From Perna viridis (Eukaryota): a DNA stretch of 64,000 nucleotides. Positions 190 through 64,000 of this stretch are shown piece after piece. The stretch lies in assembly GCA_037379345.1 (NCBI GenBank), contig CM074513.1:25730001-25794000 (forward strand), written 5' to 3'. Below the pieces are notes generated by a model. The model worked only from the letters and a program-made list of their open reading frames with translations. It had not been told where the DNA came from and made no database searches. The position numbers and the translations under genes were made by a program. The stretch's first letter is position 1. Each line of letters starts with the position of its first letter.

Positions 190-828
190 CAATAACAAAA
201 CCCACAGCTATCAGGATTTCCCTGGAAGCAAGAAGTATATGCCAATTCTCCAAAACCATGTCACCATATCTGCCATCCCCATTAGGATTTCCTACAAACA
301 GATCACAGTCTTTGGGATTGGGTACATCTCTCCAAAGATAGTCTGTCGATGCTACAGCTCTCTTGAAATCAACATAAACATTGACACCAAACTGGATACT
401 CCATGACATCATAATATCATAGTAACGATTGGTTTCCAGGTCTGTGACATAAACTGTCCACTCACGGTCTTTTGTACTGATTTTAAAATACATTCTCTCG
501 TCACGGTAGTAAATAGCATAGCCTGTTGAATCAGGATGATCACCACAGTTTGTGTAAATGTACGAGTTGTCTTTGAGTGAATTAAACTTGATTGTAAATG
601 ATATGGAGATACCAAGTGAACAGGAATCTGGATGGTAAAGACATGGGTTATCATCTTTATTCCCAACTTTCAGGTACTGATCCTGGCCATTAAACCCTAA
701 GGATAGTTTATCATTTTCGTTCTTTAATAGTTTCATCCCTCCATAAGTAGCAATAGTACCAGCTTGTACATATAATTTACTTCCTTCTATCCTTATGAAG
801 AACAATCTGTACTCATAGATTCTGTCCA
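190..828 (-). CDS. LamG / concanavalin-A-like domain exon (639 nt, phase 1-1); gene continues beyond the window start
   Basis: LGFNGQDQYLKVG...CLYHPDSCSLGISISF...GYAIYY...MSWSIQFGVNVYVD; ends at a gtgag donor, not at a true stop. Confidence 0.87.
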
Positions 829-3800
829 CTATAAAGTAAAATTACTTTTATAAGCAGTAATATACTATAATTGTGTATAGAAAGCAATATAAGTTCATTA
901 ATTGTACAAAAATGGAACCTTTCTCATGAAATATAATATAAACATCTCTTACAGTACATTTTAAACATCTTTGTAGAGCTTCACATCTTGCTTCATCAGG
1001 TTAACTTTGATGCTTTCTATCATGCCTTCAACAGGACTACCCAGCTTTTAAGATGTAAATGTGTGCGGTATGGCAAAAGTTGGAAAGATCAAAGAGAAAA
1101 ACCAATAGATCAAAAGTAAATGCAGACAAATCAGCTTCAAAGTGTGTGAATCTCAGGCAAAATGATTGAGAGTTGGCTCTTTCGCTATCATTATTCTGTA
1201 TGTATAAAATTGGACCAATCCATTACTAGTCGACCTTGTTATACTATGGAGAAACATATAGACTGATTTCATCAGTTACAATATGTACACCCAGAACAAA
1301 AGTTGTATTAAATTCAATCCAGCACTTTAAAAAAAGCGGTAAATTAATGAAAGAGATATCAACAACACAAATATGGAAACATGACAAAACCTATGCAGCT
1401 AAATACCAGACAATTAACCTTGCATGTCCCATTCAACTTCAGTGGTTAAGGATATACAATGACCACTACTTACCACTAATAACTGTCCAGTCAATCTTGG
1501 ATATTTCAGTTCTACATTCCAGTTGTGGATTTGTAGGATTAGCAAACCCATGCTGGTAGCATGTGTCATCAATAATACAAATGTCATCCTAAAAGAAATA
1601 CCAGAAACATATCAAGAGTGTGTATAAACCTATAAACTGTTTCCATAGAGTAGTCTGACTGATTTATTAAATGTATTTATTTAGAGAAATTTTGCAAAAA
1701 TAAATATACATGAGTTTAAATTTAAGTATAAATAAATACAGAGCATACTGGGGCAAAAAACTTGCAAATGATGCCTGTCCTATGACATGCCATTTCTATA
1801 ATATTGAGTTAATAGAATAATCTATAGTAAATTTATCTTTACCATGCATTTTACAAATCCTGAGTCCATTCTATAAAACAGAAAGATAAACCCAGGTTGG
1901 TTAGGCTTAACATGTATCTTGAAAAATAATATTTGTCCACGGGTATTGATAATACATACCCTTTTAGAACATCCGTCTGTGATATTAACATCACAAGTAT
2001 CACAGTAACCATTATATACTAAATATGGTAACCAATCACCATAGTCTATACCATTGTTGCTAACGGTAACATTATAGATGGCAATCTTTGGCAGTAGACA
2101 AGAAACACTGTCAATATCTATATATTCAGCTTTGACTGTTCCTATCTCCCCAGTGGTTGTAAGATTTTGCTGGAAAATAAAATTGAACAAATAAATATGA
2201 TGAATAGCCTTGACAGAGAACATGATATGCAAAATGTGTCCTTAGCTGCCAATCCATAGCTCTGAAGGTTGTTTTATTTACATTTGGAAAGATAAACCTT
2301 CAGAGCTACATATTCCTGGCTAGATTAATATTATTCTTGTCTATATCTCAAACAAAAATAGGAAACCAAAAAAGAAAACATTCAATTATTAAGAAATATC
2401 ATACAGAACACTACTGTAATACCTTAAACATGATAAGAAAATAGGGAAAGACAGACAAATAGGCAGGCAGATAGATATACCATAATATCTCTGCAAAATT
2501 ACAGGTGTAATCAAATTGAAAATTCTCTGTGAAACTTTATTCCAGAATAGGAATTGAAAGTTGAAAAACACCATTTTTGTAAAAGTGAAAACAAATGTAT
2601 GAATTACGACCAACTATGGGAAAATCATCCATGGACAAGGAATCCTAGCCAGGAAGACAAAAGACAATAGACAAAGAAAGATTTACACACCTTAAAAGAA
2701 CTAAAAAATACACTGTACATACAAAACATCTCTAAAAACCTTGATAACTCAGGTACTCCAGAAGAGTAAAAGACATCCTAAATCTGAGCAACATTAAACT
2801 CAAAATTTTACCTGCATTTTATAGTCTAAGTTAAGAGGTCCTAGTTGAGAAAACACCAATATGCCTCAGACAGTCCTGAGGCTAAACAGAGCAGACATTT
2901 ATAGGTAGAAAATTGTGGACTGTTTATACAAACAGCTATTTAACTTACATATAAGACTTCATAATGACAAGTCAAATTATCTGTATCTGCAAAGTTTTCT
3001 CCCTCTATTGTGACTTTCAGACAATGCAGACGTTTTAGATTGTTATCACACGGGTTTGTGGAACCAATCTCAATGACCTCTGGAGGAATGGTGCTATCAA
3101 TGGAACAATCATCACCAATCCATTTACCTGTACAGTGACATTCACCTGAAGAAGGAAGATAATTGTCAACATGATCAGAGGAAAAAGTAAGACAAATATC
3201 TTTTTCTTATACATTTGACCTACTGAGTGCAAAATGTATATTGGAACGAGTTTTGTATCTTGTGTGTACTTCTTTTCCCATGAAATGGAATATTCTTTTT
3301 TTCCCAGTCTAGTAAAACTAACACAAAAATTAAATTAAAGCCATGCATTATAGAAGTAAGGTAATATGTTGCATGCACCCTTTATAACAATAGTAATAAT
3401 GAAACACCCAAGTAATCATCATAAAAATATATGAAAATCTATTTTTTTTTTTTTTGCAATGACAAAGAGGCAACATTATTGCCAAATTCTAAACTTTCCT
3501 GGCTAAATCAATAAATGATATGCTATTAACTTAGATGCTTGAATCAAAATCCAATGCATACTTTCTATACATGTTCCATGATCACTACATTCATTCGGAC
3601 ATAGGTTATCTACAATCTCAGGTAGTGGTTCAGGATCATCAGTTCCTGCTACCGTAATCCAGAACTCTACATCAACAGTAACAAAGATCTCAGCCAACTC
3701 TAACAAGTCTTCAAACTGCTCTTTAGCCCAGGTAACATCATCTGTAATCTAAAATTCACATGATTCGTTAAGTTTGACGTCGATAAATAAACAAACTTAT

Positions 3801-6800
3801 TTTGACCTCTGCATTCTCTATATCAACACCATTATTGAAAAAAGTGGTAGTTGCACCACATTTAATTTGTTGTAGCACAGTCAGTTTGCTTGTATACCCT
3901 GTTTATTCTGACAGTAAATAATGCAAAAGGTAATCCATTAAGAAAGCTACAAACTAACAGTATTCAAAAATATGATTATAAGAAATGCCTATGAGAGACG
4001 AACCTATTCCTACTCAAACAAACTGCAAATAGCAGTTTTGTTGATCGTGCACTACCATGTTGATACAGGTGATGTCTTGACCAATGATAATATGCAAGCC
4101 TTCCTAGACCTGTGTTAAAGTGAAAAAATCACTTCTCAATTAAGTTTAAAAAATCGCTTCTCAATTACCTATGTCATTTATGATAGAACAATTTTCAGTA
4201 TGTTTCAAGCCTTTTAAATATATAAGACATCACTGACACTATCCCAATTATTATATTACCTGAATATCTTCAATACAACTTTCCAGCATCAGCTGGTACT
4301 CCACATCCATTCCCTTTAAAGCTTTACATTTCTTGCCGACCTCTCTCGAATCTACATAAGTCAAACATGTCTGTCTGGCAAATTCTAGAGTTATACCCCC
4401 TGGAGTAGGCCAGGACAGTTCCTAGAAACAAAAAAAGTGTTTTTTCCCTTAATTTATTCATACCAATATACAATAAACTCACAACCTTTTACCATTTGGA
4501 TTTTTTATTAACAGGATTATAAGTTGCTTATATTGGCAATCCATATCAGGAATTTTCACATGTTCATTATGAAGGTCATTATATACTGTTTGATTAACAG
4601 AATCCTGTTTCAAAATTTAGAATTATTAAAACATTGCCATGATCTTGGACTTAACCTCATACAACAATAATCCATAGCTTCTCAGCAGATATAAATCTTC
4701 AACATTAAAGTAGTTTATGGATTAAACTTACAAATTATTTAACATACTGACCAAAGCAAGGACATTTTAAGTGTATTTGTGTTAAGAATTGAATGTTTCA
4801 TTTTTGATGTTTCATTAGCGTGTAAAGCATTGACCATAGCACTTCAAACCTAAAATGTGTGATTGGTCAACCCTTTCACATGCTGATGAAACATTCTATT
4901 TTTATGATCACATTTCATATATTTCTCATTTTTATTTCTATTATACTTTAGAAATATATAAAAAGTACACAATACACAGGGATCAATAAAAGCAGTCCAC
5001 TTAACTGTGGGTGTGGCTGATATAAATTGTTTGAAGATGAATTTCATCAACTCATGCACATCCAGTGTAAAGTCAATTATCCAATGAGATTAGCATATTT
5101 TAATGAGATGCACAGTAAATGTAATTATTAAGGCTAGAAGTAATGTCCCAAAATGGTGTATACAATTTAAGATACATCAGCAATTAAGTAGAACTCCAGC
5201 TAAGAATCATGCAAAATGTGATTCATGGGTTAAAAGCCTGCATATTTATATTTTTGATATTTTGTTTGAACAGCCACAGTAAACAGAAATAAACACTCAA
5301 TTTTTCATATAACCCGTGTTCTTAGAAGATAAAAATTATATACAATGCACTGTAGATTTCAAAATTTAGGGAGATAACTCTGTAAAAGACAGTCAAATAC
5401 AATAGAATCTATTGGACTTTCAATGTTGATTATCACCTAAGAGAAGCAGATTTGAATGAATAATTACACATTTCATAGTATACACCCATAAAACAACTTA
5501 ATTTCAAAAATAAAAATATGTAGCCTTTTTTGGGGTGTATCACATTTTTCAGATTTTGCATGATTCTTACAAAGACAGCTACTTAAGACTATAAAAACTT
5601 ACAGGTTGGTTGTAGTTATGATCATACTGAAATTGACCTATAACTGACGTTGTCAAACATTTAGCTACAGGACTTTCTGCTGTCTCAAGTAATCTTTCTG
5701 TAACATCCTTCAAACCTTTAAAAAGATAAGGGAATAAATACTACAAACCAACAAGATTAAATATACAACAATGCAGGTCTATGATATATTAATTAGGTTT
5801 AATGTAAATTATCCATCTTCCGCTCTTAACCAACTTTTTTTTATCTAGTTTTATTTCCGATTTTTATTTTGAACTCTACAATTTGTACCTTTCTTTTTCT
5901 TATATTTTTTCTTCCTTTTCTCAATTTCTTCACAGACTTGATAATCCAGTCCTACGTCACATTCCGTTTGCTCATCCTCCTGACAGTTACAGTATGAAAC
6001 CAGTTCTACTGTTTTAGCCTTTGTGGGACAATATCCTCGCCATAAACTTTCTTCTGTAGTTGTTACCCTGGTAACAAAGAATATGAATATTTGTTTTAAT
6101 CACCTTAAGATACACCTATAACTATGTAACATAATTTCCACTATTGGATCATTCAAACTAAGCGAAAAACAACACATCCCTTTGTTGTGAGGATCCAATA
6201 GCCTAGGTCCATATTCTCTTTCAAATGCCTACAACCACTTAGAGAATCAATAACATTGATATCAAACATTGATGATTTCTTGTACATGGTACAGCCCTTG
6301 TACTAACAAAAAATATTCGGAATTATTTCATTAACAAATAACTTTTGAAAAAGCATAGCCTGAAAACTTTACAACTAATGCAAACCAAAATGCAGATCAA
6401 AGGGGGCCCCTATCAATTTGCAAATATGAAAAAGCCTCTTTTTGTGTGTAAATGCATGCATTAAAATCTGTTTATCAAGGATTGTGTTTGGGGCCCTGTT
6501 GCCAGCCCCCTCAAATGGTTCTCTAGATCTGCCACTGAAAGAGCCTCTTTTATTTTAATATGTCCATCATTTCTTCCTCAAACACTGAAACCCCATAAAA
6601 GATCCTGTTAAACTCCTTGTGTAAACTCTATTGCAGTTTTTTTTAAATCAAGATACTATACTGTATATAAATTTACCTCCAATCTGCAGAGAAGTGATCA
6701 GGTTTTTTCTCCTTACTTCCATATATTTCACCATTCCTCAAGGTTAAATCATTAGTTTTGTCATCATCAAATACTCCACAAAGTCCTGATATTCAAAACA

Positions 6801-54800: not shown

Positions 54801-57800
54801 ATATTTCTCTTTTCATTGGCACTTCAGTTGTTTATAGACCCATGATTGTGATTGATCACCAGTTTCTACCAACAATGAATCTTTGTCTATTTCAAAATAA
54901 TCAAATTAAAATCAATTCATATGACTTCTTTAAAATATGAACCAATACACATTTAATGATTTTTTGGTAATTCCTGCAACCATTGTTTTAATTGATCTGT
55001 TGTGATAATTTCAGCCAATATCCTTACCTTGATAGTAGCTGTATACATATCAGACATGGAGAATTCTGCTCTATTGTTGTCACAGTCCTCAGCATTACAT
55101 ACAGTTACTCCACATTCAACCTACAGATATAAACCACAGACAAGTTTTTACAAATATAAAACAAATACAAAACTAATTCTTAATCGTCACAAAACATCAA
55201 ACTAAGTTACTAATTCACTCCACAGGAGTGAATGTGAAAGTTCTTATCAGTTTTTTTAATAGTGAGTTTAAATTCAAATGATAGCAGAAAAGTTACTATC
55301 ATAGAGATGCACACTTAATAGCAATACTTTAATACCCAATACATGAAGTAGTAACCACAATAAGATTGAAATCATTTGTTGACCATTCCAAAACTTGAAG
55401 GATAATTTTGTATCATATATAACTGGAACTAACAAACAAGACACCAGAAAATTCTCAACTGTTTGGGATGTCATCAACTTCAAGAACTTTTTTTGGAATT
55501 ACCATGGAAGTATTCTTAGACTTAAGTTTAAAGTTTGGTGGCATTGGGGCCTGGGCTTTAAATACATTTGTACATGTAATCAAGCAACAAGTTTTTTTTT
55601 ACAAATACATACTTCTACTGCAGACTCCGAAAACTCTAAAACTAATAAAAAAATGACTATACATGTACTTACAGTTGACCCATCCTGAATCTCATTAGCA
55701 AGCATGTCATCTAGATAGAAGTCAGTATAGTTCACTGATGGTGTTGTTACTGTCAAGAACTTCCCGTCAACCTTCCATAGGACACTATACATTAATGGCG
55801 TGTTACTCTCCACTTTATCAAACTGACATTTAAAGCTATCATTACCAGGTCCATAGAATGTTGGCATCACATGGATATCTGAAGCTTTGGGTGGTCTCTG
55901 TGCGCCAGACTCTATACCTAGAAACAGTTAACAGTTGTGTAGATTTTGCTATTTTCAAATACCATCACCATGGTTTTGCTTCAAATACTGAATAAGGATT
56001 GCCAAGGACTGCCAAGGAAAATGTTGACTGATTCAACCTTGACCTGAGTCTCTTGGTAGGTCCTGACAAGCTAGTATCTTATTTCAATTTTATTAATTTA
56101 TTAATTTGTTGCCATATATATAATATGTAAAAACAAGAAAATTAAGAAAATAATTTAGGAAATAAATTCCATCTGCTTGGATTAGTAAAATTAACATTTT
56201 TAATTACCTTAATATAACAATAATCATTAGCTTAAATATATCTTAATGTCATGAATGTGTTCTTTTTTAAATGAATTTCCATCTTTAACATTCTTGTGAA
56301 CTTAATTTTGAAGATCTTCCTTAGAAACATCAAAAAGAACAATCTATCTAAAACAAATAGCTTCTCAAAGTCTTCTAACTTTCTATTCAACTTTGACCTA
56401 GATGAGCAACTATAACTTCTATTAATATCTTTAAAATCATTTTAATAAAAAAAACTCCAATGTCATTGAATTCTTTTCTCCTAAAATGAAAACACTTTTC
56501 ATTACCAACTAGTGATACACTATAATACTAGTACAGACTTCTACGATTCTATTCTATCCCAATGTTAACTATAATAATCTATCCCAATGTTAACTATAAT
56601 ATTCTATCCCAATATTAACTATAATAATCTATCCCAATGTTAACTATGATATTCTATCCCAATGTTAACTATAATATTCTATCCCAATGTTAACTTTAAT
56701 ATTTTATCATGATGTTAACCTATATCAAAAACACCAATATACTTATTATCATAAATAATTGCATTCATATAGTACTTGTGAATCATTCCATCAGTAAACA
56801 AATTGGTTATATCAACATTATACTTTAGTTGTAGTTATGACACATTTTTAATTCAAGGTACCCAAATTTCTCTTTTTTTTTCAATATATAAATAGAACAA
56901 GATATCAGTACAATGATTACTTTAACAAACAAAACCAGTAGAAATACACTGGAAGAATTTATTTTGTATCAATATTTTTGTGGTTTTGTAAAAAAATTAA
57001 AAAGTTCTAGAAGATTAGATTTCTTTTTTTCTTTTCATCATCACTGTTTAAAACATAACTGACAATTCAATTTGGAATTTAAAGTTGTGGTTCAATCTGC
57101 CCCGGAAAATCAAGAAATTATTGTGACCGTATTAATTTTGAAGGTTGCTAATTTTCACAGATTCTGTCAAGTGAACATATTTGTTATCAATTTTGGCAGT
57201 TTAAAAAAATGATAAGTGTTATATAAAGTGATTAAACAATCAATTTGTGAGTACTATCTTTCACGCTTTCTCTCCACTGTGAAAACAGTAAAAACTGGTA
57301 TATCATGAAAATTGATACAGTCACAGTAAGTGTCCAACCTAAACAATACTTTCACCACTATCCATTGAATTCTTTTATCAATATGGTACATTGAATCAAC
57401 AACTTAACCTTAGAAATGGAGTTTTACATTGGTATTACTGTCTACATGCATATTGATAACCCAGTGCTCAATTTACCTGTATCATTTTTAGTGATATTGT
57501 TAGTAAAATATTCCCCTGTAACATCATTAAAACATGAGTAATACTAGTTCATAAAGTATTGTATAATAATGGCACAATGAAATAATTATTGACCCTTTGA
57601 GAGCTTATATCTTTAATTACCATCCATCCACACCCCCAAAGGAGGGCATCCTCTTGCCTATATTGTGGTGCAGTTATAATTAGGTTAAAACGGAAAAAGT
57701 TTGTGTAAATATTGGTTTCCGACAACTTAAACATGCATATGCACAAATACAGGAGATGGGAAATGATGGTCTGTCTAAAAAAATAATTACTATAAAAATT

Positions 57801-60800
57801 TGTGTTATTAAATATATGTCTAAAAGGATGGGCATTTTCTTAAATAAAATAATATCAACAAAAGATATTGTTTTATTTATAACAGAAAAGTTATAAAACT
57901 ACAGTATTAAACATAATTATCACTATCTATAAAAACACATACCTTCTACACATGTATAATAATGATACTCCCAGTCTCTATAGTAACCAAATGACCCTGA
58001 ACTTTGATCTACTTTCTTCAGGTTGCCATCTGCTAGTATACAGATACCAGACTTGGAGTCAAACTTGACAGCCTTACACCCAGGGATTGGTTCACAAAGC
58101 TGTTTACATCGACTCAAAGTCCAGACATTCTCTTCCATTTTAAGGTGTGTGTCATTTGAGAAGTAGCCACTGAATTGGGCCATTTTTGTCCATTCAACAT
58201 TCTTTCCAGGACAGGCAGCTATAGTGAAAGTCATAACTTTAAACTTTACACACATATTAGCAATACCTTCTTTGAAGATTTGAATCCAATACAAGAAATA
58301 TTGTCTGTTTCAAATTAAAACTTAAAATGAGGCTGCTATGATGAAATGATGACCAAAAGTGACCATTCTAAGTCAAATCAATATTATAAATTTATTGTCA
58401 TTATATCTTTAAACTCTCCATGACATCAGAAACCCATTAACTTATAAAGAAACACAAAATAATTCATTACCATTATCGCAATTCCATTCTGCATATGTCC
58501 AGTTAGAGTGAACTGTTTGATTAGCTATGTAGGATCCAGCATCTGCTGAGCTATATGTAGACATGAAGCAACTACCCATACCACTGTCATAATCAAAAGA
58601 AGAGCAAACAAACTCAGATTCAACCTCACACGCTTTCTCACAGTCTTCTATTGATGTTTCTGATGTTTCCTTGGAATCATGGAACAGTAGGGCACTAGAG
58701 AGATCCCTGCTCCAGACAATGTTAGAGTCAGGGTAACATTGATCTGAAATGGAGATAGTATAACAGAAAACCTAGCATTTGTTTAAAGGAAATGAATCAA
58801 AACCATACAAAACAGTTCCAAATAAGGCCCTTTGCATTTACCGAGAAGCTCTTGTTTTTGGAGGAAATTAATTGGTTACATGCAATATGAGGGATATTGT
58901 CCCTCAAGAAGACGAAAACAAATTTAGTGATTTTTCAATTTTTTAGAAATTGAGCACTTAATTTCAACCAAAAACATATTAGTTCAGCAGCTACTGTGAA
59001 AGGCTCTATTATACATTATTGTTCAATCTTGATAAAGTTCTGACTATGAAAATACAAAATCATTTTGCAAAACATTGAGTATTAATATAAAGTTTTATAC
59101 AACTTTTGCATTTTAGAGTAATTCTAGTAATTTTACACAGTTTTACAAATACTGTTGAGGGGGACTGGAATTTGATAAATTTCCTTATTACAACCCTGAT
59201 CTTGATATGGCACTACCTTTGTCAACAAGCGCACTCCATTCAGTAGTATTAGGTGCTAAACAGCCTTGTTGATGGTTCGTAGGGTTACGATCTCCTTCAT
59301 GAAAACATTTTCCGTCAATGTAACAGACACCATCCTAAAAAGATTGAAAATAATATCAGTGGAAATAAAGATGATAACAAAGCTTTTTTTTCTGAACTTT
59401 GGATTACATTTTGTATTGTCATTTGTTTTAATTTTTACTGAAACCAATTTTCCCTTCATAATATAACAGACAGATCAAGTCTTATCAATGATTCTACATG
59501 GTAGTTTATGCAAGTCACTTTGAGAAATCCATTTTTAAAATATGGTTTTTAATTTAACTTTCCAGTTTTGTAGCTAAGCTGCCATGTTCTCACAGTGCTG
59601 AATTAATTAGCAAATTAAATACCATTCTAATTATAACACCTACTAAAGGACTAAGTACTTTTCATATTAATTTCAAAACTTATATACAATTAGGTATATA
59701 TGTTTAATAATTACTTTTAATTTACAGAAAACTGGGTCAGTAGAACAGTTGTAACATTCTGGGTTGTAAGAGATGGTGACCATTGGATTAGCAACAACCT
59801 CTGTTGTGTTTACATTGCTGACTGTCACTTCGTAGCGCCCTCTAGTGGGCAATGTACATGTAACATGGCCACTGCTGATGAACATGACATTTGCTTCCAT
59901 CCAATTGGAAGTAGACCAATAACCTGTTTCATTTATCTATTGGAGGAATTTAAAAAAAAATACAATTACAAATTCAGAAGAAACAAATTCAGGCATATTT
60001 TAAGTCACAAAATGAGCATTGCAAGTAGTGCATTCAGTTTTCTGTACAATGTACACCATGTATAATTGATTTGTATTAAATTTACTTTGAAGATCTTAGC
60101 AAGAGTAAATTTTATCAACATTCTATGTGTTTTTTGTTTTGTCTGTCTTGTTTTTTGCTTTGTTTTTCTCTACTGAATTTTAAGTCTTCAATGTTATTCA
60201 AATTGCAAGTTCCATTAAAGTTACTTTTATATGAAAAACCTTCCAAAATTCAATCTGATAAATGATTTATCAACTATCTACACTCACATCTATATTTCTT
60301 AGATAACATCTTAGTTCATTACTCTTGACAAAATCCTGACCGTAAACATCAAGTTTCATATCAGCATTCATGGTCAACTCATTGAAGAGTTCCTTATCAA
60401 GGGAAGTAATCACAGGTGGTACTGTGGCATTCACACTACAGTCCATACCAATAAAACCAGCAGCACAGTCACATATTCCTAAAAATAATGTATTTTATTG
60501 TTCATACCAACCCTATATGAAACATGTTATAACATACACTGGTACATATCAAAGGTTATTTCTTGGTTCAGTCAAAGCATATTTTTTCTTGCCACCATAT
60601 TTAACATGTAGTGCTTTCCCTGTAAATTTGAAAAGAAGTTACTCAATATAAAATAACACATTTCCCCCTTTGTTTTACTTTTGGTAGACCTTCAATTAAG
60701 ACGACATGAGTTGCTTCATTTTTTCTCACAAGACGATAAATCTCACTACAGAACTGACCAATTACTGTAACCAAGGAAAATTTACTACTCGTAGACCTGA

Positions 60801-63800
60801 AATCCTTACCTTCATTACACTGGCCATTTCCCCTACACCCATATGGACAGAGTTTTGTAAGGATGTCATCGGCTGATATAGATATATCCCTCCTAATAGT
60901 TTGTCTACAGTCTTCTTCTAATATCTCATCTACATCTGAGGCAAACACATCCTTCCCAGTGAACTGTTCAAAAAATTAAATAGGAAACCACTTAAAACAA
61001 GGTATTATTTGAATTTGGAATTATTTTGGATTTAAGAAAATAAGTCAAAAAAAATATTTGTAGAACTTAAACCTACTAAAGGTTTTAGTCATGACTTTTG
61101 TTATCCAACTAACCTTACTCCTTAGCCATGTTGTATGACTTACCCCCTTATTTTTGGTTATTTTCATAAAAATATTCCAAAATAATTCGAAATTCAAACA
61201 ATACCTTGTTTTCAAGCTTTTTAATAGAAAAGACTTGTATCCTAATAACACAAAACTTTCACTATATCCCTTAGCAATAGTTATAAGTTCTACTGAACAT
61301 TAGTTCCTCAGTAGTAAAATAAATATTCTTTTTAAGGCATAACTTATCTATTAAACAAGCTTGTTATATTTGTAAACACATAAAAATATTCTTTAAACCA
61401 ACAGGTTCAAAATAGCATAGTAAAGATTAAGGGATTTCTACATCAGGATGACCAAAAAGAAAAAAATTATATATAAATCAGAAAAAATTATAAATCAGAC
61501 TACAAACTTGCAATGAAATGAAATTTACCTTGATGTTGTAAACACAGTTGTTGACGTCCCTAACATCAATGTCAATGAGGTCTTTACAGATACCCTTAAC
61601 TCTGTCTGTTTTGTTCTGACAGTAGGATCTAGCTGTCTCCTCTGTCCAATCTCCTGACCATGTCGCTGTCTATAAAATAAAAAACAAAAACAAAAACAAC
61701 AATAGAACACACCTTACTTAGAAATTGTAAAAATTACTTTACATGTATCTTAAACTGATTCATCATTAAATTTGATTTTGGCCATTTTCCAGGTCAACAG
61801 TTGTCAAAAGAAAAACATTGAACTAGCCTTACTTCAACATTCCTAGCAATAATATACTTTCTAAGAACTAGACAACTAGTCTTATTTGATATGGACAAGT
61901 TCTACAGTACTCCATACCTTTTCAACAGTCTTATCACAGTCCTGAAAGACCTTTGGTCTAGGTGTGGCTGAATCAGGATCACAGTACTGAGGGAACATTC
62001 CATGATTCTTAAAGTAGTCAGTCTTATCCATTCCTAAAATAAAGAGAAAAGTTCCTTAGATATCATCTGGTACCTTAACTAACTGATACTGATTATATAT
62101 GAAAGCTAAAACATGACAGGGAATCTTAATAAAGGAAGCACAAGAATTTGCATAAATATAAGTTTTATTTCATGTTTTACAAGATGTTTTACAAGATTTT
62201 AACACATTTAAGAAGTGGATACTGCAGTTGTGTTACAGTTAAAACAAAATGAATAAGTAAATATTAAAAAGAAAGTAATTTTAATGCTCAACAATTATAC
62301 AAAACTCATTATAAAGCTAAATAATTCAAGTCTGTATACAGACTTCAACAACATTTTCCAAATTCAACATTAAAACTCAATCTACAGATTTACAAAAAAG
62401 TTAAATACTAACCTCTAGTGAAATCTTTTGCTTTAGCACATGTTTGTACATCGCCATAGAAACCACATTCAGCCGAGGAAGAAGAACAATCACACACATC
62501 TTTATCTGTTGGTGTTGCCATGGCAGGTGAATCTGGACACTTGCCAAGATAAATGGATTCTTCTACTGGTACACTGAAAATCATAAGTGATACAATGTAT
62601 CATACTGGTACTTCAAATCAGGGAGGAAAATATAAATTTGCAACAATTCCAGGATTTACTGTGTGACAGCACATTTCACAAAATAATATGTTGTTAAGAT
62701 AAATCTCCTTTCAATTACCATATACATTTAGCAGGCTAGATATTAAGTCACAAACCTGGTAGTCCAGGTTATTACAATTATCGTAATGGTTGTTAAATTC
62801 ATTCAAAACTGGTAATTACAGACCAGCGTATATGTATGCATGTAGAAATGGTTAAAACGTTCATTTTGGGTTTGGACTTTAAACATAAGTATGGTAATAA
62901 GTTTATAACCTTAAAAAAAAGAAGTAAACAAAATGAGTGATATTAAAGATCAATCTCATTCATACATTTCATTTGCATTTGTAAATGTTATAGTTAGTTT
63001 TATCTATCCAAGATTCAATACTATACCTCCATGATTTTACAAAATCTTCCGGATACTGGCCTACTATGTCACTGACATTTCCATTCTTTATCATAAAATC
63101 ATTGTCAGCTTTGTTGTCATAGGTACCACATAATCCTACAAAATATTGAAGAATTTATTTCATAAACAAATTTACAATTTGTTCAACACTGAATATATTC
63201 CACATAAAAAATGTTTTGGTTAAGTTTTTTTTTGTTTGTTTGTTTGTTTGGTTTTTTTTTTCGTTTGGGTTTCCCGATTTTGTTTGTACCATACAACAAA
63301 TAAAACAAAAAACTTTACAAAATTTAAATCTTTAAAAACATTTTCAAATACATTTCTTAAAAGAAACAAAAATATCCGACATGACCAGTTCATTTTGTAT
63401 GGTAATATAACTAGCAAATTATGATTTATGAAATATTGAAAATTCCTTTCTATAAAAACAAGGTTTGAAGTTAACAGGCATGTAACTACCTTCAGTTTTT
63501 CCCATATCCATTAATGAGGGGTAAAACCAGACATTCAGGTACCCACTAGCACTGGTCTGTACTCTTAGTTCTCCACCAGATGGTAAGAAAATCTAATAAA
63601 AAAATAATCACTCACAATGCATTTTTAACATTAAATTAAATAAGAAAACCCTGTTTATTTCAGATAAACACAATTTTGTGATATTTACAAAAAGCCACTT
63701 TACAAGATTGACATGAAAAACACCCTCTCTTAAAAAAAAATCACAAATAATCTGTAAGTATAATAATGTACCAATATCACAATTAAATTCCTGAATTTTT

Positions 63801-64000
63801 TAGTGCGAGCATGGATTATATGGGTATTTTTTCAGATATTTTGGATCTATTTTTCAAAGAACCATTAATCAGTTGTATTAGAATGGGGAGATATAAAGTG
63901 TATATTGACCTCGTTAAATGACCTTTGAACACAATGCTGTGATTTTTACCTCATACTGAGTTCCTACATTGATTGAAGTTATCCTAAAACCATCATTGAT
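190..64000 (-). CDS. Giant multi-exon gene (internal portion, 90 exons, ~5,600 aa visible): tandem VWDE-like (von Willebrand factor D and EGF domain) extracellular protein with PAN, LamG and FAMeT accessory domains
   Basis: Exons traced by GT/AG boundaries and translation. Summed length is 16,789 nt (5,596 codons + 1), with phases matching at every junction. Recurrent VWD motifs (DPHxxTFDG, GEFVLY, GLCGxFDxxxxND...FxxSW), WPTPxG...CxxDI, EGF (CxxxCxxxGxCxxGxCxCxxGxxGxDC) and CxIDGxCY...W. Open at both window edges. Confidence 0.92.
1474..11655 (-). CDS. Super-module R6
   Basis: Last 221 nt of exon 11435-12409, then exons 10992-11078, 10235-10636, 9178-9254 (CKSINDPHLTTFDG), 8488-8551, 7601-7834, 7251-7362, 6677-6785 (GLCGVFDDDKTND), 5889-6067, 5603-5715, 4260-4421 (WPTPGG), 3562-3748, 2949-3145, 1960-2169, 1474-1588. 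Confidence 0.9.
5188..5582. mobile_element. TTAA-flanked ~395-bp non-autonomous element (family copy A)
   Basis: ttaa|gtag...taagaatcatgcaaaat ... attttgcatgattctta...ctac|ttaa; homologous along its length to 32410-32784 and, inverted, to 50467-50862. Confidence 0.78.
8676..8880. mobile_element. Short MITE of the CTGT...ACAG type
   Basis: Inverted ends tattgtgaaag / ctttcacagta, internal ttt(c/t)gtgg and cacgaa repeats. Confidence 0.6.
9327..9828 (+). mobile_element. Helentron-associated / Pearl-like non-autonomous element
   Basis: Two ~160-bp internal tandem units (aactcagcatagc...gttcaatatcttcaag at about 9462 and 9623), then a GACG/GACA microsatellite and a 3' palindrome (tatgccccca...tggggacata) before an A-run. 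Confidence 0.62.
11435..12409 (-). CDS. Fused 975-nt exon: end of R5 (CRIGGLCY), LamG-like domain, first Ig-like segment of R6
   Basis: Continuous ORF NDVCRIGGLCY...GKALQLNGIDDFVDLG...CLGDPEKC...YSWSIQGGLSLYFDG...FVCKFDKL...YSVYW; cag acceptor and gtgag donor. Confidence 0.9.
12295..21425 (-). CDS. Super-module R5
   Basis: Exons 21205-21425, 20753-20845, 19827-20032, 19236-19428, 18689-18765 (CESHNDPHMRTFDG), 17990-18053, 17113-17316, 16683-16794, 15906-16014 (GLCGNFDGDKDND), 15251-15420, 14891-15000, 14557-14700 (WPTPNG), 14104-14281, 13482-13666, 12730-12912, plus the first 115 nt of exon 11435-12409. Confidence 0.9.
16152..16537. mobile_element. TTAA-flanked ~386-bp element, divergent relative
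   Basis: ttaa|gtacttctctgtctaagaattaggcaa ... ttgcctgattcttacacagaatggtac|ttaa. Confidence 0.65.
17657..17723. repeat. Minisatellite, 20 bp x3.3
   Basis: Unit aaaattggtatgattatcct. Confidence 0.9.
18129..18509. mobile_element. MITE with GC-rich TIRs and a 3-bp TTA duplication (PIF/Harbinger-type target)
   Basis: tta|tcacgcggcggggaacgagat ... atctcgttctccgccgcatga|tta. Confidence 0.72.
20080..20237. repeat. Minisatellite, 38 bp x4
   Basis: Unit aaacttgagttctatgagctctgtggatgtaatccata. Confidence 0.9.
21880..22518 (-). CDS. LamG / concanavalin-A-like domain exon (639 nt, phase 1-1)
   Basis: GNPVLVDGWKGGFAVELDGKTQMI...CLSDPENC...YILNSGG...GIALYY...LEFSWSIDGLDLFIDG is a Laminin_G_3-like pattern; paralogous to 190-828 and 11656-12294. 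Confidence 0.85.
22804..32309 (-). CDS. Super-module R4 (15 exons, ~776 aa)
   Basis: Exons 32083-32309, 31290-31382, 30479-30856, 30044-30111 (CYSDNAHTWTFDN), 29764-29821, 29019-29231, 28554-28665, 28004-28082 (GLCGSFDGDGSND), 27215-27360, 26377-26486, 25354-25509, 24652-24835, 23894-24084, 23225-23422, 22804-22918. Confidence 0.9.
25920..26130 (+). mobile_element. Truncated copy related to the 27405-27830 element
   Basis: Near-identical ~70-bp segment shared with about 27705-27772; boundaries approximate. Confidence 0.4.
27405..27830 (+). mobile_element. Helentron/Pearl-like element remnant
   Basis: ~152-bp internal repeat (gtcct..gacagtaactata at about 27490 and 27643). The 3' segment aaacttgagc...caaacagacag.tatggtgattcctaca is shared with about 26060-26128. 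Boundaries approximate. Confidence 0.45.
28099..28230. repeat. Minisatellite, 44 bp x3
   Basis: Unit atacttccatcatgtaaaggaaaatattttgcaggaaaaatgct. Confidence 0.9.
31918..32000. repeat. Tandem duplication, 42 bp x2
   Basis: Unit tccttaacccacttttcatccaatgttttcacatgcatttca. Confidence 0.9.
32410..33907. mobile_element. TTAA-flanked element (copy B), right end interrupted by the 32785-33901 transposon
   Basis: Starts ttaa|gtagcactccacctaagaatcaagcaaaatg and shares gggagataactctgtaaa and tgtagcctttttggggg with copy A; the terminal ctac resumes after the nested insertion. Confidence 0.72.
32785..33901. mobile_element. Non-autonomous Tc1/mariner/pogo-like DNA transposon (~1.1 kb)
   Basis: Imperfect 24-bp TIRs cagtggattccgcttaattgcata / tatgcgattaagtggagtcgactg (20/24 match), TA on both sides, subterminal atgcaa(a)taaccg repeats, no transposase ORF. 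Confidence 0.8.
34254..34858. repeat. Tandem array (~67-80-bp units, 7 copies including the real exon end) derived from the 3' part of exon 34787-34901 plus its splice donor
   Basis: Unit catgacttaccctttgt(t/g/a)agactcca...taggactaca.atataagtt...ttgtgggttcc; cttac (gtaag on the minus strand) ends at 34262, 34342, 34422, 34502, 34569, 34647 and 34786. Confidence 0.92.
34725..34772 (+). mobile_element. Very short retroposon (SINE/LINE) 3' tail
   Basis: atagctgaaatattgctgctcggacattaaaccccaacaaacaaacaa with a (caaa)n tail, flanked by imperfect 11-bp direct repeats tcctcgtgact / tccttatgact. Confidence 0.55.
34787..42340 (-). CDS. Super-module R3, including the FAMeT exon inside its EGF domain
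   Basis: Exons 42096-42340, 41854-41946, 41162-41557, 40810-40886 (CESVNLGHVSTFDG), 40463-40526, 39986-40195, 39394-39614, 39001-39152, 38393-38490, 37959-38114, 37105-37261, 36118-36531, 35691-35881, 35158-35373, 34787-34901. Confidence 0.9.
36118..36531 (-). CDS. Farnesoic acid O-methyltransferase-like (Methyltransf_FA / FAMeT) domain exon (414 nt, phase 1-1)
   Basis: FITFMTKTCKDVSIIL...ITIGGENDT...GCDQYQSFWLRWDGGVVEIGEG...MWKDPE...DIGLSSG...VW matches the FAMeT pattern FxxxxCxDxxIxL / IGGxxN / CxxxxxFWxxWxxGxIxxGxG / WxDP / IGxS...W. Clean cag/gtatg boundaries. Confidence 0.82.
42492..42755 (-). CDS. PAN/Apple domain exon (264 nt, phase 1-1)
   Basis: PCGKRGITWTRHSGYSL...TECRRLCLQETDFICRSFEIIPALGICYLSKS...YEDWTCDK is a canonical PAN pattern. 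Confidence 0.88.
43304..43570 (-). CDS. PAN/Apple domain exon (267 nt, phase 1-1)
   Basis: SCGILDIAW...VSTCRGACLAQMEAPVCDGFDLETVTQNCSLF...HQEWLCVN; AAG acceptor, gtagg donor. Confidence 0.8.
43920..44434 (+). mobile_element. Interspersed repeat carrying an expanded 46-bp tandem array
   Basis: Contains tgtcccaagccaggaacctgt...cagtggttgt and ends cattggcaatcataccacatc, motifs I recognise from abundant mussel-type repeats (recollection, not searched). Confidence 0.5.
43956..44184. repeat. Minisatellite, 46 bp x5
   Basis: Unit gctatatactttatgtgtctgtcccaagccaggaacctgttgcccc. Confidence 0.92.
44738..55917 (-). CDS. Super-module R2 (14 exons, ~820 aa)
   Basis: Exons 55673-55917, 55028-55120, 54096-54506, 53662-53738 (CISINDPHITTFDQ), 53138-53414, 52171-52282, 51638-51746 (GLCGNFNDD), 50898-51043, 50103-50221, 49635-49787, 49042-49231, 48005-48195, 46546-46767, 44738-44852. 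Confidence 0.9.
45526..45689. mobile_element. Small MITE with CAGGGGCGGATCCA termini
   Basis: aattc|caggggcggatcca ... tggatccgcgcctg|aattc; a degenerate relative lies at about 6390-6536. Confidence 0.7.
46840..46957. repeat. Minisatellite, 39 bp x3
   Basis: Unit ttgttttgattctatgatacttctctttaatgaacaatg. Confidence 0.9.
47162..47937. mobile_element. MITE-like element with (TA)CTGT...ACAG(TA) ends
   Basis: TIRs tactgtcaatgtattaatattca / tgaaaattaatacgttgacagta, with subterminal aattttcgc repeats. Confidence 0.78.
48597..48983. mobile_element. TTAA-flanked ~387-bp element, divergent relative
   Basis: ttaa|gtaccagtccacataaaattcagaca ... tgtctgatttttataaagactgctac|ttaa. Confidence 0.62.
50467..50862. 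mobile_element. TTAA-flanked ~396-bp element (copy C, inverted relative to A)
   Basis: ttaa|gtagcagtctttgtaagaatcatg ... gcatgattcttagctggaatgctac|ttaa. Confidence 0.78.
52441..52537. repeat. Short inverted repeat / miniature hairpin element
   Basis: tatcttgtataaaga ... tctttatacaagata perfect 15-bp arms, extended imperfectly by tttggt / accaaa. Confidence 0.55.
56547..56718. repeat. Minisatellite, 25-26 bp x6-7
   Basis: Unit attctatcccaatgttaactataat. Confidence 0.9.
57121..57326. mobile_element. Short MITE of the CTGT...ACAG type
   Basis: Inverted ends tattgtgaccgtattaattttga / tgaaaattgatacagtcacagta. Confidence 0.6.
57943..58218 (-). CDS. PAN/Apple domain exon (276 nt, phase 1-1)
   Basis: ACPGKNVEW...TLSRCKQLCEPIPGCKAVKFDSKSGICILAD...YYTCVE; tag acceptor, gtatg donor. 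Confidence 0.85.
58471..58743 (-). CDS. PAN/Apple domain exon (273 nt, phase 1-1), absent from the ORF track
   Basis: QCYPDSNIVWSRD...SIEDCEKACEVESEFVCSSFDYDSGMGSCFMS...WTYAEWNCDN has the PAN pattern CxxxC...CxSFxY...CxL. cag acceptor and gtaat donor. Confidence 0.85.
59217..64000 (-). CDS. Super-module R1 (partial): C-terminal VWD, C8-like, EGF, IPT/Ig-like, CxIDGxC
   Basis: Exons 63950-64000 (partial), 63490-63592, 63027-63135 (GLCGTYDNKADND...FVKSW), 62413-62573, 61918-62033, 61529-61669, 60810-60963 (LCPYGCRGNGQCNE), 60288-60478 (GICDCAAGFIGMDCS), 59715-59936, 59217-59334 (CYIDGKCF). Confidence 0.9.

Follow-up and report, generated by a model that had tools for sequence, protein, structure and literature searches.

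The 64,000-nucleotide stretch of Perna viridis DNA analysed here (the window, in whose numbering all positions are given) covers the central part of one very large mollusc gene, which is expressed, lies on the minus strand and runs beyond the window at both ends. Our full model of the gene covers about 129 kb (G000:C3:25684710-25814013) in about 146 exons, and its 9,785 codons contain only the terminal stop; we put the protein at about 9,000-9,800 aa. The locus is probably a single gene for a type I membrane glycoprotein of ~9,000-9,800 residues with nine tandem VWDE-type modules, A to I. In the model, a signal peptide and a discoidin-like domain precede the nine modules with their phase-1 linkers, module I follows a Thr-rich mucin-like stretch, and a TM helix and tail come last. 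Each module (~730 aa) consists of Ig-like, VWD, Cys-rich/helical, single teneurin-type EGF, IPT-like and small Cys-rich end parts, in that order. The linker exons encode two PAN/Apple domains after A and after B, nothing follows C, and one LamG-like domain follows each of D-H. The parts outside the window (5' end, modules G-I, mucin-like exons and TM/tail) were modelled from sequence alone.

In all-against-all BLASTP of stop-free stretches, six copies of one ordered minus-strand exon set emerged in the window, with a period of 10-12.5 kb; the locus holds nine such sets. Copies of the exon encoding EGF/IPT, for instance, lie in minus-strand stop-free stretches at 60273-60494, 47981-48205, 35670-35969, 23885-24136, 13473-13715 and 2943-3206. 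A paralogue-guided splice model joined 93 exons, from 71118 to -1084 and all with GT-AG ends, into 5,788 codons without a stop. A sequence-only reading of this DNA had proposed at least six tandem ~800-aa VWD-EGF super-modules in one frame, with 90 exons and more than 5,600 aa. The six in-frame copies were confirmed, with 88 exons and 5,481 open codons in the window, while the whole array has nine. With its linker a module measures about 800-1,050 aa, and the unit is not simply VWD-EGF, since it also has Ig-like and IPT-like parts, PAN or LamG-like linkers and a single EGF. Over the nine modules, exons of 77, 64 and 109 nt each recur seven times, 191 nt six times, 115 nt five times (118 nt four times) and 112 nt four times, and exon phases are conserved, with every module/linker boundary in phase 1-1. 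The sizes noted earlier (77, 64, 112, 109, 191 and 115 nt) are thus recurrent and keep their phases, but module D deviates, its counterparts of the 77-, 64- and 109-nt exons being modelled from sequence as 68, 58 and 100 nt, and exons are fused in B (277 nt), C (221 nt) and E (975 nt). Since about 7% of random codons would be stops at the local base composition, and 29 cysteines are invariant among modules only 24-39% identical to one another, chance can be ruled out. Exon-wise Pfam matches in the window were weak because the domains are spread across many short exons.

Module A occupies 59217..64000 within the window, on the minus strand like all features below, and was delimited by BLASTP of stop-free stretches and the splice model. 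Its exons are 63923-64159 (crossing the window edge), 63490-63592, 63027-63135, 62413-62573, 61529-61665, 60810-60963, 60288-60478 (EGF/IPT, 191 nt), 59715-59936 and 59217-59334, and the module tree places it with the first module of Biomphalaria P0024 (SH-aLRT 98). Two PAN/Apple exons follow in phase 1-1 (57943..58743: 58471-58743 and 57943-58218), with in-frame junctions 59217/58743 and 58471/58218 in the splice model; both matched Pfam PAN_1 above cut-off (E 3.8e-9 and 1.4e-7), and the pair is collinear with residues 306-481 of Pecten P0003. Module B opens with an Ig_VWDE-type exon (55613..55917; phase 1>0, modelled junctions) that matches Pfam Ig_VWDE weakly (E 0.0064) and is collinear with P0003 residues 485-562. 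The splice model gives the B core 13 exons (44738..55120) of 93, 411, 77, 277 (64+213 fused), 112, 109, 146, 119, 153, 190, 191, 222 and 115 nt. This core is 43% identical to P0003 558-1315; the two pair with SH-aLRT 92 within a three-row clade of module B, Pecten and Biomphalaria (SH-aLRT 100). The two PAN/Apple exons after B (42492..43570: 43304-43570 and 42492-42755; phase 1-1) are paralogous to the first pair (31% over 94 aa) and collinear with P0003 residues 1316-1492. The Ig_VWDE-type exon that starts module C (42096..42340) matches Pfam Ig_VWDE just below threshold (E 4.4e-6; 27.0 bits, cut-off 28.1). The 13 exons of the modelled C core (34787..41946) measure 93, 438, 77, 64, 210, 221 (112+109 fused), 152, 98, 156, 157, 191, 216 and 115 nt, and exon 39394-39614 matches the C-terminal end of Pfam VWD over cut-off (E 7.9e-6, 26.7 bits). 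Module C is sister to P0003 1577-2295 (SH-aLRT 99), and no PAN or LamG linker follows either of them.

A 2.5-kb intron leads in phase 1 from 34787 to the Ig_VWDE-type exon of module D (32083..32309). The splice model gives the D core 14 exons (22804..31382) of 93, 378, 68, 58, 213, 112, 100, 146, 110, 156, 184, 191, 198 and 115 nt, and a 639-nt LamG-like linker of Laminin_G_3 type follows at 21880..22518 (phase 1-1), which aligns with the Pfam Laminin_G_3 regions of Ylistrum P0046 and Tubulanus P0031. Module E begins with a 221-nt Ig_VWDE-type exon (21205..21425), a weak Pfam Ig_VWDE match, and continues with exons e1-e13 (12730..20845; sizes as listed 93, 206, 193, 77, 64, 204, 112, 109, 170, 110, 144, 178, 185 and 183 nt), the first four joined in RNA contigs and the rest by the splice model. 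The fused 975-nt exon at 11435..12409, with an open 363-aa frame, combines the last exon of E (115 nt), the LamG-like linker (639 nt) and the Ig exon of F (221 nt), and these part sizes equal those of separate RNA-verified exons of module D. In the splice model the F core has 14 exons (1474..11078) of 87, 402, 77, 64, 234, 112, 109, 179, 113, 162, 187, 197, 249 and 115 nt. The 639-nt LamG-like linker after it (190..828; splice model and alignment) ends in a phase-1 donor at 190, and the exon that this donor reaches, the Ig exon of module G, lies 1 kb outside the window; an own-genome search found two further copies of this linker downstream.

RNA contigs from four runs, belonging to four studies, contain exons only, with GT..AG ends, and splice module D to E in frame. 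On the D side they join 23894-24084, 23225-23422 and 22804-22918, the last three exons of the module, to 21880-22518 and 21205-21425, and on the E side they continue to 20753-20845, 19827-20032, 19236-19428 and an exon with upper coordinate 18765, so that linker joints 22804/22518 and 21880/21425 occur in all four runs and 21205/20845 follows. The joined exons form one open frame of 619 aa spanning both modules. One of the contigs is 15,128 nt long, with its positions 11532-13390 mapping here; by length arithmetic it would start in the Ig exon of D and reach roughly the end of module H. D/E is the one module boundary with direct RNA support, from runs whose type is recorded as 'RNA? (a guess)', and contigs are no proof of one full-length molecule. 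In the best RNA-type runs, 22-26% of the sampled words were present, to be compared with the 28.7% that the model assigns to exons. Junctions 59217/58743, 34787/32309 and 22804/22518, which the sequence-only reading had singled out, were all reproduced in phase 1, the last now RNA-confirmed.

Upstream of the window, the model has a single signal-peptide-like first exon with a strong donor (84013); the discoidin part may miss one exon. Downstream, the Thr-rich mucin-like (PTS) part measures about 830 aa, with an ambiguous PTS1 acceptor (-24867 to -24987), and Pfam support was sought for the Ig exon of module I and not obtained. A single TM exon (-44534..-44663) precedes a short Tyr-rich tail, and all complete homologues likewise end in one TM helix and a short tail. 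We therefore predict a type I membrane protein rather than the simply secreted matrix or mucus scaffold proposed before.

The earlier impression that this architecture was unrecognised is right to the extent that our searches of the literature found no paper describing it, but public databases hold it as fragmented automatic 'uncharacterized protein' predictions from many molluscs (Pecten, Tegillarca, Aplysia, Elysia, Bulinus, Biomphalaria, Argonauta and Liolophura) and a nemertean. Predicted orthologues include Pecten maximus XP_033756293.1, Aplysia californica LOC106014199 and LOC101855535, Tegillarca granosa KUTeg_004694 and Biomphalaria pfeifferi Bpfe_013183. These automatic models, mostly truncated or split and named 'uncharacterized' or 'hypothetical', are ~30-46% identical to the window's modules, share modules, order and linkers, and have modules that pair one-to-one with the window's in the tree. 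Pecten P0003 is collinear from the end of A through B and C to the start of D, including the linker pattern (PAN, PAN, none); Biomphalaria P0024 has the order SP, F5/8C, Ig_VWDE, module, PAN, module; and in Aplysia the locus is divided between two neighbouring models, of 1,554 and 4,956 aa, with 735 bp between them. In the tree, modules A, B, C, D and I find their partners in other species and not in one another. Individual modules pair with those at the same position in scallop and snail proteins, so the array is older than the bivalve/gastropod split. Together with the low identity and the invariant cysteines, this position-specific orthology upholds the earlier suggestion of old duplications under constraint.

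One locus might still yield mainly shorter products, which we consider rather unlikely. With all boundaries in phase 1, splicing could leave out entire modules or linkers without breaking the frame, or an alternative 3' end after H, before the mucin-like and TM exons, could give a secreted form. The 15.1-kb RNA contig would, by the same length arithmetic, stop no more than about 40 nt from where the LamG exon of module H ends, and reading through the donor there meets a stop 50 nt on; the weakly supported Ig exon of module I would also fit such an end. However, the following exon is repetitive Thr-rich sequence, which breaks short-read assembly anyway, and the contig would have no 3' UTR. Moreover, the partner of module I in the tree is the TM-linked last module of Tubulanus, likewise preceded by a LamG and an Ig domain, and Aplysia P0158 combines many modules and a TM in one model.

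A tandem cluster of separate VWDE-like genes of about 10-12 kb, each with its own start and stop, is very improbable, and for D/E it is already largely refuted by the in-frame splicing in four runs. Many VWDE-like loci do exist in this genome (at least 51 matches of the EGF/IPT exon), and single-module TM relatives, named 'VWDE-like' at NCBI, occur in scallops, annelids and hemichordates. Between the modules, however, the model frame and a boundary scan revealed neither a stop nor any ATG/signal-peptide or TM exon; every module begins with an AG-preceded internal exon, and orthologous multi-module models exist in other species. The continuous frame, the D-to-E splicing and the collinear orthologues instead agree with the single giant protein and transcript unit first proposed. 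An expressed but decaying array, its protein free of selection, is scarcely credible: the DPH motif (below) is gone from modules A, C and D and the VWD region of D has odd modelled exon sizes, but 9,785 codons are stop-free, the cysteines are invariant, module-by-module orthology persists across mollusc classes and all modelled splice sites are canonical.

The model of an annelid homologue (P0083, mean pLDDT 59) has a VWD that matches MUC2 D3 (Z 21.7, rmsd 2.0 Å, 165 residues), as well as Ig-like and IPT-like parts. An Asp-Pro-His motif is present in six of the nine VWD domains, as GDPH in H and I and most commonly as NDPH. FCGBP, in which Asp-Pro cleavage at GDPH has been described (PMC8267560, PMC10880436), similarly carries many tandem VWD-containing assemblies in one chain, with GDPH/DPH in most VWDs, and its chains score Z 17-18 against the homologue model (mean pLDDT 59). 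It differs in repeating VWD-C8-TIL, in being secreted and in lacking Ig_VWDE, IPT-like, PAN and LamG parts; the homologues scanned here gave no Pfam hit to C8 or TIL. The earlier contrast with FCGBP and zonadhesin thus holds for accessory domains but not in principle, since the VWD superposes closely on that of mucin and VWF D-assemblies. Among the Pfam domains in homologues of the window's modules are VWD, Ig_VWDE (PF25776), Vwde (PF26129) and teneurin-type EGF. VWDE itself, described as secreted, has one VWD region and then an EGF array, whereas here the whole VWD-containing unit occurs nine times with one EGF each, and PAN, LamG-like, discoidin and mucin-like parts and a TM anchor are added. 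Zonadhesin, sperm-specific in vertebrates, is a type I membrane protein with MAM domains, several tandem D assemblies (VWD-C8-TIL units), a mucin-like stretch, EGF, one TM helix and a short tail; we saw no MAM domain here. Membrane-tethered mucins of the MUC4 type, with an apical barrier or adhesion role, combine a Thr/Ser-rich stretch, VWD, EGF and a single TM helix. In MUC4 a single VWD is accompanied by NIDO and AMOP domains and the PTS domain makes up most of the protein, whereas the bulk here is nine folded Cys-rich modules, with a PTS part of ~830 aa. We place the architecture, a repeated VWD-containing unit on a single membrane anchor, both in the VWDE family and with the poly-D-assembly design of FCGBP and zonadhesin.

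By analogy with FCGBP and mucins, the DPH motifs suggest a putative autocatalytic Asp-Pro cleavage, after which disulfides would keep the fragments together. The protein may act at the cell surface as a long glycosylated scaffold rich in disulfides, in the manner of a membrane-tethered mucin or adhesion protein, and would hold discoidin, PAN and LamG-like carbohydrate- or protein-binding domains at set distances from an epithelial or other cell surface. The conservation of module order points to partners specific to each position. Altogether, the design is old and common to molluscs.

The genome is AT-rich (723 Mb, ~32% G+C), the window contains no N runs, and every feature below is on the minus strand unless another is given; positions below 1 or above 64000 are window-relative positions in flanking DNA. 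An all-against-all BLASTP comparison of stop-free minus-strand stretches recovered one ordered set six times, with a period of 10–12.5 kb, and the same comparison extended to 164 kb defined nine tandem VWDE-type modules, A to I. Aligned over six copies, the EGF/IPT exons share 24–39% identity, with G, C, C, G, C, P, L and C invariant. When this alignment was searched against the whole genome, it found nine consecutive copies on the contig; the window contains six of them, and the other three lie farther downstream. The array of at least six modules proposed by the sequence-only reading is therefore real and, if anything, was understated.

Splice sites were placed in two steps, with a pairwise solver between homology cores that required GT-AG ends and frame continuity, and with a paralogue-guided search for each exon family with phases fixed. 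The window and its edges yielded 93 exons, all GT-AG, which join into 5,788 codons without a stop; the window proper accounts for 88 exons and 5,481 codons. The exon sizes noted earlier recurred over the nine modules (77, 64 and 109 nt in seven each, 191 nt in six, 115 nt in five with 118 nt in four, and 112 nt in four), and the three junctions proposed with them (59217/58743, 34787/32309 and 22804/22518) were recovered in the splice model, all in phase 1. In the complete model, which includes two threonine-rich exons between modules H and I, 146 exons supply 29,358 coding bases and read through 9,785 codons without an internal stop; leaving out those two exons gives ~8,950 codons. Its RNA-backed part is 18600-24200, and the remainder is a sequence-based model.

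Paralogous modules show exact intron losses. Single exons correspond to fusions in module E (11435-12409; 975 = 115+639+221 nt), module C (39394-39614; 221 = 112+109), module B (53138-53414; 277 = 64+213), module G (-3253 to -3725; 473 = ~396+77) and module H (-19885 to -20141; 257 nt, the sum of core exons e9 and e10). The opposite is seen in two modules: the second exon, of ~400 nt, is divided in A (172+230) and in E (206+193), with the break differing in place and phase between them. Intronic repeat families common to the modules occur in both orientations at 5094-5598, 32337-32810 and 50412-50893 (both strands), with 60–80% protein-level identity, and a local tandem array lies at 43888-44268 on the plus strand; these look like transposon remnants rather than exons.

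Next to a single giant gene, the reading to be weighed was a cluster of separate genes, with transcripts terminating and restarting between modules. The RNA data came from runs whose RNA type was guessed, none being recorded as RNA. The best of them, which were many, held 22–26% of the sampled words from 14500-24400, where the modelled exonic share is 28.7%. Four such runs, from four studies, were mapped to 18600-24200. In all four, contig depth fell on modelled exons only and was zero in introns, with one intronic stretch, described below, standing apart. Eight joints with CT..AC ends (GT..AG on the minus strand) connect the last three exons of module D, through the 639-nt linker exon and the 221-nt Ig exon that opens the next module, to the first four exons of module E. 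The joined exons keep an open frame of 619 aa, while the remaining two frames contain 45 and 68 stops. Transcripts thus run from D into E, spliced in frame in four runs, at a boundary where a gene cluster would have them restart.

One contig is 15,128 nt long, and its positions 11532–13390 map to 18600-24200. Judged by model lengths, which is arithmetic and not alignment, it reaches from the Ig exon of module D to a point no more than ~40 nt from the end of the module H linker exon. Near the first of these points, 34254-34901 carries tandem near-identical copies of the 3’ end and donor of the last exon of module C, and the open stretches 34272-34527 and 34578-34901 share 77–100% identity in BLASTP; this copy array might be the cause of the contig's end in the nearby Ig exon. 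Within the mapped region, the intronic stretch 18787-18973 had a summed contig depth of 34–66 in all four runs, against 2–26 in exons, and several contigs continue from it into unrelated sequence; a transcribed repeat or a piece of a transposon is the probable source.

The module boundaries point the same way as the D-to-E joints. The opening exon of every module is of the internal type, with a pyrimidine tract and AG ahead of it. A 136-kb scan for an ATG with a hydrophobic first exon and a good donor found one convincing case, at 84013, upstream of all modules, and no convincing signal-peptide-type first exon at module boundaries. The entire model has one TM-like segment. Separate genes are disfavoured by these internal-type openings, the sole first exon and the sole TM-like segment, and we regard a single giant gene as well supported. 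Since module and linker boundaries are all in phase 1, in-frame skipping of entire modules or linkers is possible.

Both ends of this gene lie outside the window, the modelled 5’ end at C3:25814013 and the 3’ end near C3:25684710. Module A starts at 72119 and is preceded by an Ig exon at 73669-73895, upstream of which are two exons with a weak F5/8 type C match. Both can be aligned with the discoidin domain at the N-terminus of homologues from snail and scallop, and one discoidin exon may still be missing from the model. The signal-peptide-like first exon, at 84013-83941, is hydrophobic and its donor, GTAAG, is in phase 1. On the downstream side, modules G to I repeat the exon pattern seen in the window. 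The 7-kb interval between H and I was considered as an intron or as the end of the gene and rejected, as it contains two large open threonine-rich exons with repeats (G000:C3:25701726-25705061, window-relative -24939 to -28274; ~1,740 and 762 nt). They encode 579 and 253 codons with 33–40% T and 45–53% T+S+P in TEGTT-like repeated units, and they fit phase 1 on both sides. Their sequence predicts a long Pro/Thr/Ser-rich tandem-repeat domain of the membrane-tethered mucin type, and such repeats would account for the end of the RNA contig there. Module I is followed by a 130-nt exon for a hydrophobic helix with YRR behind it, and the last exon, with a TGA at -45290, encodes a Tyr-rich tail. The only hydrophobic 21-mer in a hydropathy scan lay at residue 8848 of 8951, ahead of YRR. 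We therefore predict a type I single-pass membrane protein, on the strength of simple hydropathy scans with both ends outside the window. The giant secreted protein proposed earlier thus holds as a giant single chain but not as a simply secreted one, since the model ends in a TM helix and tail.

The domains of each module are cut into many short exons, and for this reason we relied on homologues for their identities; Pfam scans of the large exons were mostly blank. For the VWD domain (PF00094), the C-terminal end of the profile matched the fused exon 39394-39614 at 26.7 bits (cut-off 22.9), and full matches were found in the collinear homologues P0003 (Pecten maximus XP_033756293.1; E 3e-24) and P0002 (1.4e-49). 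A VWD domain is thus predicted in each module, with the per-module assignment resting on homology. A PF00094 scan of the mussel's own genome flagged one exon of this locus, in module G, because the VWD domain is divided among five short exons. An Asp-Pro-His motif on the first VWD exon reads GDPH in H and I and NDPH in B, E, F and G, and is lost in A, C and D. EGF_Teneurin matched exon 13473-13715 just below threshold (E 8e-5, 23.1 bits, cut-off 24.3); the CxCxxGxxGxxC pattern is invariant in six of six EGF copies and the homologues exceed the cut-off, which indicates a teneurin-type EGF after the VWD region. Against six Ig exons, Ig_VWDE (PF25776), whose profile spans two exons, scored 27.0 bits at best and 16–20 for the rest (cut-off 28.1), and the orthologue P0003 passed it at 33.4 bits. 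Vwde (PF26129) appears in the precomputed Pfam annotation of the homologues only and is absent from the hmmscan outputs. In the linkers between modules, exon-wise Pfam scans placed PAN_1 above cut-off in both pairs. The 639-nt linker exons, which have no Pfam match of their own, are called LamG-like because they align to the Laminin_G_3 regions of Ylistrum (P0046) and Tubulanus (P0031) proteins. The model totals ~406 cysteines and 85 N-glycosylation sequons.

An AlphaFold model of the full chain of a single-module annelid homologue (P0083) had low confidence (pLDDT 59, pTM 0.34), so that domain-level matches alone were used, and a helical region and a likeness to C8 were left aside. The VWD part, model residues ~186–380, was the only part to superpose well, matching MUC2 D3 with Z 21.7 and rmsd 2.0 Å over 165 residues, and it also matched MUC5AC, VWF, FCGBP, vitellogenin and RGM. 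An N-terminal Ig-like sandwich (Z ~8.6) and an IPT/Rel-type sandwich after the EGF (Z ~8.4) were also found.

A search of 1.84 billion proteins with a profile built on the six EGF/IPT exons matched 379 at E <1e-10, among them long proteins with three to four matched stretches. The closest relatives are molluscan. The long homologues are molluscan entries named ‘uncharacterized’ or ‘hypothetical’, with two to four Pfam VWD domains, PAN, Ig_VWDE and teneurin EGF, and a local HMM of the nine module cores matched them end to end, several times per protein. The cores share 24–39% identity and 53 invariant columns, 29 of them Cys. The Pecten protein runs collinear with the array from the end of A through B and C to the start of D, and its linkers follow suit, with PAN pairs after A and B and none after C, as in the window. 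In a maximum likelihood tree of 34 modules (quick search, LG+G4, SH-aLRT support only), module B grouped with Pecten 558–1315 and the second Biomphalaria (P0024) module (support 100), C with Pecten 1577–2295 (99), A with the first Biomphalaria module (98), D with a Bulinus module (95, a pair that joins long branches) and I with the terminal module of the nemertean Tubulanus (93), while E, F and H clustered with weaker support. This position-wise pairing, together with the Pecten collinearity, indicates that the array and its order predate the bivalve/gastropod split; the LamG-linked middle modules may be younger. The identities, invariant cysteines and cross-species pairing also bear out the suggestion that the duplications are old and under constraint. 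The Aplysia annotation splits the orthologous locus into two neighbouring models, of 1,554 and 4,956 aa with 735 bp between them, the first ending within a VWD domain, so automatic annotation tends to break this gene. A protein-database search with the Pecten protein returned none of the mussel genome's own annotated proteins in the 1,421–4,522-aa range.

By its domains the protein is a member of the VWDE family. Vertebrate VWDE has one VWD region and an EGF array; the mussel model instead has nine VWD regions, one EGF per module and a C-terminal TM helix with a tail, and so its sequence argues against the vertebrate-type architecture with a C-terminal EGF array. FCGBP and zonadhesin are alike in design, with many VWD assemblies per chain, and zonadhesin resembles the mussel model further in its mucin stretch and TM anchor. 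Their C8-TIL units are absent from the scanned homologues: neither family was among the Pfam matches of P0001–P0011, P0024, P0031, P0046 and P0151, so that C8 and TIL after each VWD, as in mucins, VWF and FCGBP, are not predicted here. The VWDE literature concerns vertebrate blastemas (PMC7390686) and a planarian comparison (PMC9117669). In our literature search, ‘Vwde’ in molluscs was incidental only, in lists of regulated genes, and no paper describing such a multi-module protein was found. The architecture is thus undescribed in the literature we searched, as first suggested, but it already sits in databases as ‘uncharacterized’ mollusc predictions: an undescribed member of a known family, built on a known design principle.

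The signal peptide, ~406 Cys, 85 sequons, threonine-rich stretch, one TM helix and short tail suggest a very long, rigidified, glycosylated ectodomain that would be anchored at the cell surface. Domains of the discoidin, PAN/Apple and LamG-like types typically bind carbohydrates or proteins. Here they would be held at fixed places between VWD modules, and their fixed, conserved order is better matched by a scaffold whose partners differ by position than by a uniform polymer. In FCGBP and mucins, GDPH is cut autocatalytically between Asp and Pro, and disulfides keep the pieces joined (PMC8267560, PMC10880436). By analogy, the DPH motifs may be cleaved at Asp-Pro with the fragments held by disulfides, and such self-cleaving sites might yield a disulfide-held chain. 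We tentatively propose, as a possibility somewhat short of probable, a molluscan and possibly lophotrochozoan-wide membrane-tethered giant whose nine modules have kept identity and order since before the bivalve/gastropod split, and which serves as a position-coded adhesive or barrier scaffold with its own partner for each module or linker, independent of but analogous to vertebrate FCGBP and zonadhesin.

Related sequences occur elsewhere in the genome. Beyond the nine at this locus, the EGF/IPT exon has at least 40 copies; its matches, at least 51 on at least 11 contigs (C1, C3–C7, C9, C10, C12–C14), are often locally clustered, for example at C5:4.93-5.14 Mb, C7:19.9-20.0 Mb and C10:20.97-21.05 Mb, so this genome has a strongly expanded VWDE-like family. 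Other tandem arrays of LamG-like exons lie at G000:C3:37593399-37603361, C13:32386985-32396392 and C13:32782910-32790477; given their identical scores, the two on C13 are probably a recent duplication. Two inverted copies at G000:C1:25700110-25706016 (+) and C1:25782059-25787965 (-) each carry an unbroken ~2,600-codon frame with four VWD matches; these are intronless multi-VWD genes, in contrast to the heavily spliced locus on C3.

At ~1 MDa before glycosylation, the protein is among the largest of this genome, as is its gene, which is expressed but has no name, no paper and, in most annotations, no intact model. Alone it opens no long-standing question, and invertebrate genomes commonly encode giant modular surface proteins. 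The order of its modules has persisted in different mollusc classes for some half a billion years, and it provides a second and independently built case of a chain that carries many VWD assemblies, to set beside FCGBP, zonadhesin and the mucins. With a correct full-length model, the fragments that appear as ‘uncharacterized’ or ‘VWDE-like’ in lists of mollusc expression and proteome data could be merged and read, and the protein becomes a concrete candidate for the biology of mollusc epithelial surfaces, mucus or attachment.
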